Below, one piece after another: positions 38,002 through 39,366 of a stretch of 64,000 bases of DNA. This DNA is from Lepidodermella squamata (Eukaryota; Animalia; Gastrotricha). The position numbers were made by a program, and so were the translations under genes. The notes under the pieces are model-generated. The model searched no databases. It had not been told where the DNA came from and saw only the letters and a program-made list of their open reading frames with translations. Location of the stretch: the NCBI GenBank assembly GCA_047495785.1, contig JBLDXI010000027.1, positions 247,397 through 311,396 of the forward strand. The letters run 5' to 3'. The number at the start of each line of letters is the position of its first letter. Positions within the stretch are counted from its first letter, which is position 1.

Positions 38002-39366
38002 ACCAATCCGAGTTGCTTTACGACGCCTGTCGCCGTTTTTTAGAAAAACAGCAACTAGCGCTTTACGTCATAGCATCAAGGTTAGAGGTATATATTTTTA
38101 CCAATAACTTTGCCGTCTGTTGCATTTCGCACTTCCCGGTCGATATATTTGCCATCCATCCTTGTTATACTGTGGCTTAGGAAGCCAAAAGAATTGCCAC
38201 TTCTACAGCGGCCTTCGGCTTAGACAGCCGGCAGCAAATTGCAACTCTACAAAACCAGTCGCTTCGACAGCGGCCGGGAGAAATTATACTAGTGCGTATA
38301 ATTAGGATTTCATAGCGCATCGACCAGTATATGCTAGATACACCTGACTGGCGCGTTTCAGTGTGCCACGACCGCTTTGTTAAGAGCGGACGATAACCAA
38401 CTAGTCGCAGCCATTTGCAGTGTCGACAAGGAATAAATTCGCTTATCTACAACTGACAAACCCTGTAGTATATAACACAGCGCACAACTTTTACGGCCGT
38501 CAGCTCTCACGATAGTAGAGCTGAGTGGCGCCGCATTAATTGCATATGCTTTTCCTGCAGCAGCGTTTTATATAAAATATTACGCGCTGTCGTCTCATAA
38601 GAGTACCTGTGTTAGAGTTTGAGGCGATTACACAAAAGGCGATGATTACGAGGCGATGAATACGAGGCGAACACGATCCCGCTTATTCCTTGCTATCCTA
38701 TAAAAAAAACCGCTTGAAAAACCGAATTGTACGCAAAAAATGGCACCTGAGAACAGCGGAACTCGTTTACCATCAACTTACTGTGTTACGCAATGGGATT
38801 TGTTTACTTCGATTGTGCCAGATGTTACATTGTTGCGCAACCGAGACAATTTAACGAGGTCAATTTTTCGAACAATGAAATTTGACATTTTCCGGCTGTG
38901 GAATTACTCAGAATCCTTCATCATTCAGCCGCGGCTTTAAGAACAGCGCTTCTCGATCGACTCATAGGAAATTTTCCCACGTTCCTATGCCTTAGGACTC
39001 ATCGATTTTGGGCAAAAAAAGTGAAAGATTAAAAAAAAAACCGGCGGATACCGGCAAAATTTTTGCAAATTTATAGTAAATATCTGCGATTGAATATTAA
39101 ATTTTCTGAGGTTTTTAGAGGTTAGTATCAATTCCGAATTGAACGCTATCTCTTAGTTTGCCGGTTTCGCGTTTACCATATACGCGCTCATCAATCAGCC
39201 GATATTTTTCGAAAAATATACAAGTTTAGCTTAGGCCTTCTGCCACATTACAACTTGGTATACTTTAAGAGCGTTTCCTTAACGTTTGGTGGTATTATCA
39301 ATAAAGAGTTATCTTTTCGACTAACTTGAAGCCTCATCTGCTAAGGCCCCCTTCTGCCGATAAGGT

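Follow-up and report, generated by a model that had tools for sequence, protein, structure and literature searches.

Diverged copies of their own target gene at the 5' ends of two mobile elements in the ribosomal DNA of the gastrotrich Lepidodermella squamata

Why should two elements that interrupt the same small gene each begin with a diverged copy of that gene? The question is raised by a stretch of 64,000 nucleotides from Lepidodermella squamata (GenBank assembly GCA_047495785.1, contig JBLDXI010000027.1, positions 247,397 to 311,396 of the forward strand), which was analysed as a whole and is called the window below. It is an array of ribosomal DNA (rDNA) in which, according to Rfam, the 18S, 5.8S and 28S genes lie on the minus strand and the 5S genes on the plus strand, the units being about 99-100% identical to one another. 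Each rDNA spacer holds two small plus-strand genes, SL-A and SL-B, with the anatomy of spliced-leader (SL) RNA genes. A full-length long interspersed element (LINE) and a non-coding element, here called X, sit at SL-A genes, and the first part of each, its head, resembles the gene at which it sits. This likeness is real and far above chance. Its probable cause is that both elements are read from the SL-A promoter and took up target sequence by 5' transduction.

In SL-A an exon of about 30 nt closes with GAG; after it come a GT donor within a stem-loop, a UUAG site, a 3' hairpin and an A-rich stretch that forms the 3' box. A short exon, a GT donor in stem-loop I, an Sm site, a 3' stem-loop and many copies, the features by which SL RNA genes are recognised, are all present. 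By this anatomy SL-A and SL-B would be SL RNA genes with a putative role in trans-splicing; a search of Rfam gave no family matching SL-A, SL-B or X. The two genes align with each other over their promoters and starts (AAATATCTGCG) and likewise over donor, Sm site, hairpin and 3' box, and the point where their likeness begins is where transcription would be expected to start. SL-A is found in every rDNA unit of the window. Eight of its copies carry the exact 44-nt target string used below, and the copy at 2267 differs from it at three positions.

When the target (20574 onward), X (10726 and 25246 onward) and the LINE (39120 onward) are aligned without gaps over 44 nt, 34 positions agree between target and X, 31 between target and LINE and 31 between X and LINE. 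The original prediction, that three similar strings occur at these places, is thus borne out. In the three-way alignment 27 columns are invariant, and in four X and LINE agree while the target differs. When the first 11-13 shared nt are set aside, the LINE continues to match the target at 18 of 31 positions, the best of about 6,200 other offsets reaching 17, and X at 23 of 33, the best other offset reaching 18; the offset control scanned 6-7 kb of element sequence. In local alignments against SL-A the 5' untranslated region (UTR) of the LINE scored 45, compared with a maximum of 36 across 2,000 dinucleotide shuffles, and X scored 93 (shuffle maximum 31) over 76 nt with one gap, beginning 4 nt before ATCTGCG.

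The homology starts earlier than was first thought. X carries the whole leader exon from ATATCTGCG at 10697, with three substitutions and one deletion relative to SL-A and with ACTAATTTTCAGGG at its end. In the LINE the homology begins at 39114, where TTTAGAG (39114-39120) matches TTCTGAG, the last seven exon bases of SL-A, and it is here that the alignment between X and the LINE begins. Within the heads GGTTAGTATCA is invariant in target, X and LINE, and GAGGTTAGTATCAAT is identical in LINE head and target, the flanks having diverged in both cases; the UUAG that aligns to the Sm site AAUUUG of SL-B is likewise invariant in all three sequences. Both heads end in the loop of the SL-A 3' hairpin; its 3' strand and the 3' box are missing from X and the LINE alike. 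Judged by alignment, the heads copy the front of the gene, namely exon sequence, stem-loop I with the donor, UUAG and the 5' strand of the terminal hairpin, and thus more than the downstream part, which the elements had been supposed to rebuild.

The heads belong to the elements and not to the insertion events. As predicted, the LINE has a perfect 15-bp duplication of its own (AAATTTTCTGAGGTT at 39099-39113 and 45467-45481), which fixes its insertion site at the SL-A exon end and donor; its 3' end lies at 45466 instead of 45477. The head sits between the 5' duplication copy and the first open reading frame (ORF1), and hence arrived with the element. At 70-77% identity the element-borne heads are far more diverged than a fresh target-site duplication, in agreement with the original argument. 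Contigs from a public DNA run of the same organism served to check other copies. One variant-free contig covers 39088-39320 at a depth of 420, which equals the sum of its two downstream paths (304 + 108), so all detectable copies of the LINE share one 5' junction and one head. These paths (depths 304 and 108) are two variants of the LINE. Their only difference, of about 10%, is at 39321-39590 around the start of ORF1; to either side they agree fully, and the stretch looks like a recombinant patch. Other elements branch off in this run at 39104, 39112, 39113 and 39117.

A similar conclusion can be drawn for X. Its second copy in the window retains the variant exon and the head next to a reversed fragment of the LINE, with no SL promoter on its left; since exon and head are kept beside unrelated DNA, both travel with X. 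Its left end, with 2 nt of microhomology, lies at (AA)ATATCTGCG, 2-4 nt before ATCTGCG and inside AAATATCTGCG. The two copies differ by one TC and in the 5' flank, and the DNA run contains a single X contig; a segmental duplication is possible. Taken together, these observations support the view that the heads are derived from the target and are much older than the present insertions.

How, then, did target sequence come to be part of the elements? The explanation that we favour, with moderate confidence, is 5' transduction. LINE and X would insert at the end of the SL-A leader and be read from the SL-A promoter, their RNAs beginning with SL sequence. Such RNAs would yield a single precise 5' junction, as has been argued for R2 RNAs that keep 28S sequence. 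At an earlier round the exon and about 45 nt of intron, with stem-loop I, donor, UUAG and the 5' strand of the hairpin, would have joined the element RNA, either in a co-transcript from an insertion or a long target duplication that extended as far as the hairpin loop, or when the template was switched to SL RNA. The captured piece would since have been copied as the element's 5' terminus and have drifted to its present identity, while the host genes stay homogenised. A 169-bp insert in another SL-A gene exemplifies an insertion reaching into the intron, since its duplication runs into the intron; nicks of the top strand can therefore lie deeper in the intron as well. SLACS, an element of trypanosomatid SL genes, makes a long target duplication of 49 bp, and an event of this kind could give rise to a head.

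The 5' end of X coincides with the point where the likeness of SL-A and SL-B begins, and reverse transcription of an RNA initiated at the SL start, if carried to its full length, would stop where X copy 2 starts. This left end is the best evidence here for co-transcription, which we infer from it. That the host promoter transcribes the elements, as had been predicted, fits the 5' end of X near ATCTGCG, the single 5' junction of the LINE and the precedent of SLACS; a need of the head for transcription is not supported, the promoter likeness between SL-A and SL-B lying upstream of and at the start site. X itself resembles a short interspersed element (SINE), with a small-RNA-gene head, a non-coding body and a tail that may be like that of Y, a LINE-like element at the end of the window. 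With its SL-derived head it would in effect be a SINE that homes to the gene whose promoter it needs.

The relatives of the LINE suggest that its choice of target is old. ORF1 has CCHC knuckles; ORF2 encodes an apurinic/apyrimidinic (AP)-type endonuclease (APE) and a reverse transcriptase (RT) and has no ATG at its start. In Pfam, Exo_endo_phos_2 / Exo_endo_phos is found N-terminal to RVT_1, the upstream frame supplying the start of the APE domain. ORF2 has nine relatives at about 50% identity, the nearest proteins being metagenomic. In four of the relatives' contigs the 3' structure is conserved and closes with TTAG(G)n, and a donor AG/GT(A/T)(A/T)GTAT comes after a further 9-12 nt; in one (L124) the donor leads into an SL-B-like intron with Sm site, hairpin and 3' box. 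Since these relatives in other organisms adjoin similar donors, targeting of the donor must be old in the LINE lineage. Among the relatives, with an ORF2 identity of only about 50%, conservation reaches about 75% over the last 75 nt or so of the LINE 3' UTR. These nucleotides form a nested hairpin in which three pairs are kept after two-sided changes, end in TTAG plus 6-10 G and are probably the recognition element of the RT.

For ORF1 an exact look-up and a word-based homologue search gave no match. A second, profile-based word search matched only the ORF1 of one ORF2 relative (L002) and distant CCHC proteins. A separate profile search with ORF1 yielded five further contigs with 5' regions, one of which (L125) belongs to the same family as L001, with 100% identical ORF1. 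Another, L127 from a different organism, carries an SL-B-like module of about 100 nt located 126 nt before ORF1 (p < 1/2000 by shuffling). Its parts are an exon-like beginning, an Sm-like site, a hairpin with a G-to-U change compensated by C-to-A, and a 3' box. Upstream of the module lies an incomplete second copy of 37 nt (105-250 for the region; 32/37 aligned columns identical, two of the others being gaps), and TAAATATC at the boundary of the two is the start context of the SL genes in the window. The module is either element-borne or part of the flank. It also bears on the proposal that the elements dropped the 3' hairpin to allow read-through. This is weakened, as the L127 module keeps hairpin and 3' box, the LINE has a 5-bp hairpin just after its head, and in X the head is followed by a predicted single-stranded, Sm-like AAUUUUCUGG and then an 11-bp G+C hairpin.

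A 48-nt block is common to the 5' UTRs of L002 (174-222) and L128 (29-77) and contains GGGCAAAAAATC..TTTTTT. It recalls the GGCAAAATTTTTGC element upstream of the SL genes in the window and is possibly a captured promoter element. A pattern scan of metagenomes with GGTTAGTATCANTNCC gave 120+ random matches, none of which extended into SL-A; the pattern was too unspecific and the scan was discarded.

Several points weigh against 5' transduction as the origin of the heads. Transcription of LINE and X from the SL start is something that we infer from sequence. Co-transcription covers the exon and not the part of the intron that lies downstream of today's insertion point, for which an extra event is needed. 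The 11-16 nt next to the donor are perfectly kept in both heads while the flanks have diverged, which hints at selection or conversion over drift, though such run lengths have odds of only about 0.04-0.1 by our own estimate. For the four or five states that X and LINE share against the target, polarisation would need an outgroup. X copy 2 lies within a patchwork region and is possibly an assembly artefact. Finally, the 5' regions of L002, L125, L126, L128 and L129 gave no significant match to known target bases, SL-A, SL-B or the L127 module, the SL genes of these hosts being known for 18-80 nt at most.

A further possibility, which can coexist with the proposed origin and which we entertain only tentatively, is that selection keeps the head as a rebuilt 5' domain of SL RNA. 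It may act by way of the SL promoter and start complex, by Sm binding and cap hypermethylation, by donating a leader, or as a motif read by the proteins of the element. The conserved GGTTAGTATCA and GAGGTTAGTATCAAT between diverged flanks would then be expected, as would the invariant UUAG, but such runs are only marginally longer than expected in any case. Stem-loop I with the donor is predicted to re-form both in a LINE co-transcript and in X, where a U-to-C change in the exon even converts a G-U pair to G-C; one stem pair is, however, lost in X. A working part would also fit two further observations: the heads of the two families end at nearly the same 3' position although the families have unrelated 3' ends, and this donor-proximal motif is what does not vary at the targets that relatives use in other organisms. 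On the other hand, the heads of the two LINE subfamilies do not differ, but neither do other stretches of them, so that no contrast of rates is available, L002 and L125 have no recognisable head, and a head is not needed as a 'landing pad' because the duplication restores an intact target site anyway. A bolder form of the idea seems doubtful to us. In it the cell would treat the chimeric transcript as an SL RNA, assembling Sm proteins on it and hypermethylating its cap, and the transcript would perhaps be translated like a trans-spliced mRNA or donate a leader; the elements would parasitise and partly repair the SL pathway, and X would be the first SL-headed SINE homing to the sole promoter able to drive it.

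It is unlikely that the first ~125 nt of X are a complete alternative SL RNA gene, an expressed leader donor and paralogue of SL-A spread by retroposition. The 73-nt homology followed by AAUUUUCUGG and the G+C hairpin does give the classic layout of Sm site and stem-loop, and the exon of X departs from that of SL-A only by the changes given above. Against this, X has no match to an Rfam family, AATTTTCTG is also the end of the SL-A exon, the local match falls short of significance, and such a gene would leave the head of the LINE unexplained.

The original prediction had allowed for the reverse direction as well, in which SL-A ('module A') is a fixed relic of an element 5' end. We reject this as very improbable. 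The distances are star-like and the direction cannot be read from the three sequences alone, but SL-A and SL-B are paralogues through all the parts listed above, 3' box included, SL-A occurs in every unit, relatives of the LINE in other organisms sit at the donors of similar genes, and the elements have just the hairpin strand and 3' box missing that the gene possesses. Chance or faulty assembly deserves next to no credence, for the anchored ungapped likeness beats every other offset and every shuffle and, for all the perfect palindromes and patchwork junctions in the window that may be assembly errors, head and junction are confirmed by independent contigs from the public run.

The rDNA of the window also provides a control in an element specific for 28S (27755-32267, minus strand, 11-bp duplication). 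This element does not resemble its target at the 5' end, so the heads are not a general by-product of insertion in this genome. Head capture as a general mechanism for all its rDNA elements was accordingly rejected. At the same 28S site two unrelated insertions are found, this 4.5-kb element and one of 498 bp at 13233-13730 with a 12-bp duplication.

The features discussed are collected in Table 1. The body of X is G+C-rich and has only short mechanical ORFs. X and Y have in common only a 22-nt hairpin region and the TC-run end, the coding part of Y lying outside the window. The 3' region of Y (62526-64000) contains tandem repeats, about 86% identical at a distance of some 236 bp and 98.7-99.3% identical at some 470 bp. 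A second, nested relic of the target was significant neither in X (AATTTTCT-GGTTA; p about 0.3, though the 9-mer is rare in the window) nor in the 5' UTR of the LINE (p about 0.3), and the Rfam search found no ribozyme family. The patchwork at 22704-25216 is made up of 18S sequence in inverted orientation (22704-24683) and part of the LINE in reverse (24681-25216 = 44638-44103), with joins of 2-3 nt microhomology; all its pieces are 100% identical to other copies. Either RT or repair rearranged this region very recently, or the assembly is chimeric here. Similarly, 54114-58062 and 62248-58300 form a perfect inverted duplication of half an rDNA unit (100% identity, centre near 58180), and the inverted half-unit within 54114-62260 is either an rDNA palindrome or a long-read artefact.

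Table 1. Positions of the SL genes, the elements and their heads (window coordinates unless a contig is named)
Feature	Position	Strand	Description
X head, copy 1	10697..10769	+	variant leader exon from gene start and diverged intron bases 1-43
Sm-like AATTTTCTGG and 11-bp G+C hairpin (10797-10818)	10782..10818	+	directly after X head
X copy 1	10697..11604	+	non-coding, ~0.9 kb; 3' end with hairpin, AATAAA, TC run and CTGAG merging with target exon end
SL-A, intact reference copy	20544..20643	+	leader exon up to its final GAG (last G at 20574), GT donor, stem-loop I, Sm-like UUAG site, hairpin GAATGC..GCATTC on the 3' side
SL-B	21010-21119	+	paralogue of SL-A over promoter and gene
X copy 2	25217..26126	+	identical to copy 1 save one extra TC; 5' end abuts reversed LINE fragment 24681-25216
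Interrupted SL-A leader exon and first 3 intron bases	39080..39113	+	39099-39113 = 5' copy of 15-bp duplication
LINE head	39114..39167	+	exon-end-like TTTAGAG, then diverged SL-A intron bases 1-47, into host 3' hairpin loop
Full-length APE-type LINE	39114..45466	+	ORF1 39367-41790, ORF2 41751-44570, 3' end TTAG(G)8
Conserved LINE 3' UTR end	45390-45466; L001 6085-6157; L002 5215-5297; L003 4645-4727; L124 4205-4285		
3' duplication copy (45467-45481) and untouched remainder of SL-A	45467..45547	+	
Poly(A) retro-insert, 169 bp, in another SL-A gene	53946..54114	+	13-bp duplication GGTTAGTATCAAT running into intron
Y, 3' part	62248..64000	-	X's 3' hairpin and TC-run end in common; 5' end beyond window

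Site-specific retrotransposons are models for the safe targeting and expression of mobile DNA and are being made into gene-insertion tools. The LINE described here represents a lineage with an AP-type endonuclease that targets SL genes, and at its 5' end it has inherited a copy of its target that has since diverged. In X, its short non-coding partner, the leader gene itself provides the head. If the head merely records past co-transcription, it is a natural tracer of the formation of 5' junctions; if it is functional, it would link the expression of a retrotransposon to the biogenesis of the SL ribonucleoprotein.

SL genes are also the fixed place of insertion of other elements without long terminal repeats, SLACS, CZAR and CRE in trypanosomatids and NeSL-1 in nematodes, and SLACS is reported to be transcribed from position +1 of the SL gene that it interrupts (PMC3447711). 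These elements, however, have a restriction-like endonuclease C-terminal to the RT and insert inside the exon, whereas the endonuclease of our LINE is of the AP type, N-terminal, and the insertion lies at exon end and donor. All SL-targeting elements in the literature that we searched have the restriction-like type, and neither a target-derived head nor an SL-headed SINE was described there; this includes SLACS, CZAR, CRE and NeSL, for which no diverged internal copy of the target was found. In its N-terminal AP endonuclease and RT in ORF2 and its CCHC knuckles in ORF1 the LINE matches the APE-type site-specific LINEs (R1 / Tx1-like). With R2 it would share co-transcription with the target gene and does share uniform 5' junctions, which R2 RNAs retaining upstream 28S sequence are known to yield (PMC3774820). 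The sequence carried by R2 is identical to the target, lies upstream, is renewed in each round and has an end set by a ribozyme; the heads described here are old and diverged and include sequence from downstream of the insertion.

SINEs with heads derived from small nuclear RNA (snRNA) genes (SINEU, U1/U2) have been described, as has 5' transduction in SVA (SVA-MAST2), and a template switch is the proposed route for snRNA-headed SINEs (PMC4494074). Like SINEU and the U6/L1-type template-switch chimeras, X has a head from a small nuclear RNA gene of the RNA polymerase II type, a non-coding body and a possibly LINE-like (Y) tail, and capture by template switch or upstream transcription has been proposed for SINEU as for X. 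How SINEU copies are transcribed is an open question (PMC4494074). SINEU copies are dispersed, but X sits exactly behind the promoter of the gene from which its head came, and this position would solve the problem of SINE transcription; a functional head would thus answer how SINEs with polymerase II snRNA heads and no internal promoter come to be transcribed (the question in PMC4494074). In LINE-1 and SVA an upstream promoter can likewise drive the element, and the flank enters later copies. The best reading of the heads is that a known process, 5' transduction, acts here in a new setting: the transduced flank is the element's own specific target, so that each copy resembles every new site at which it inserts.
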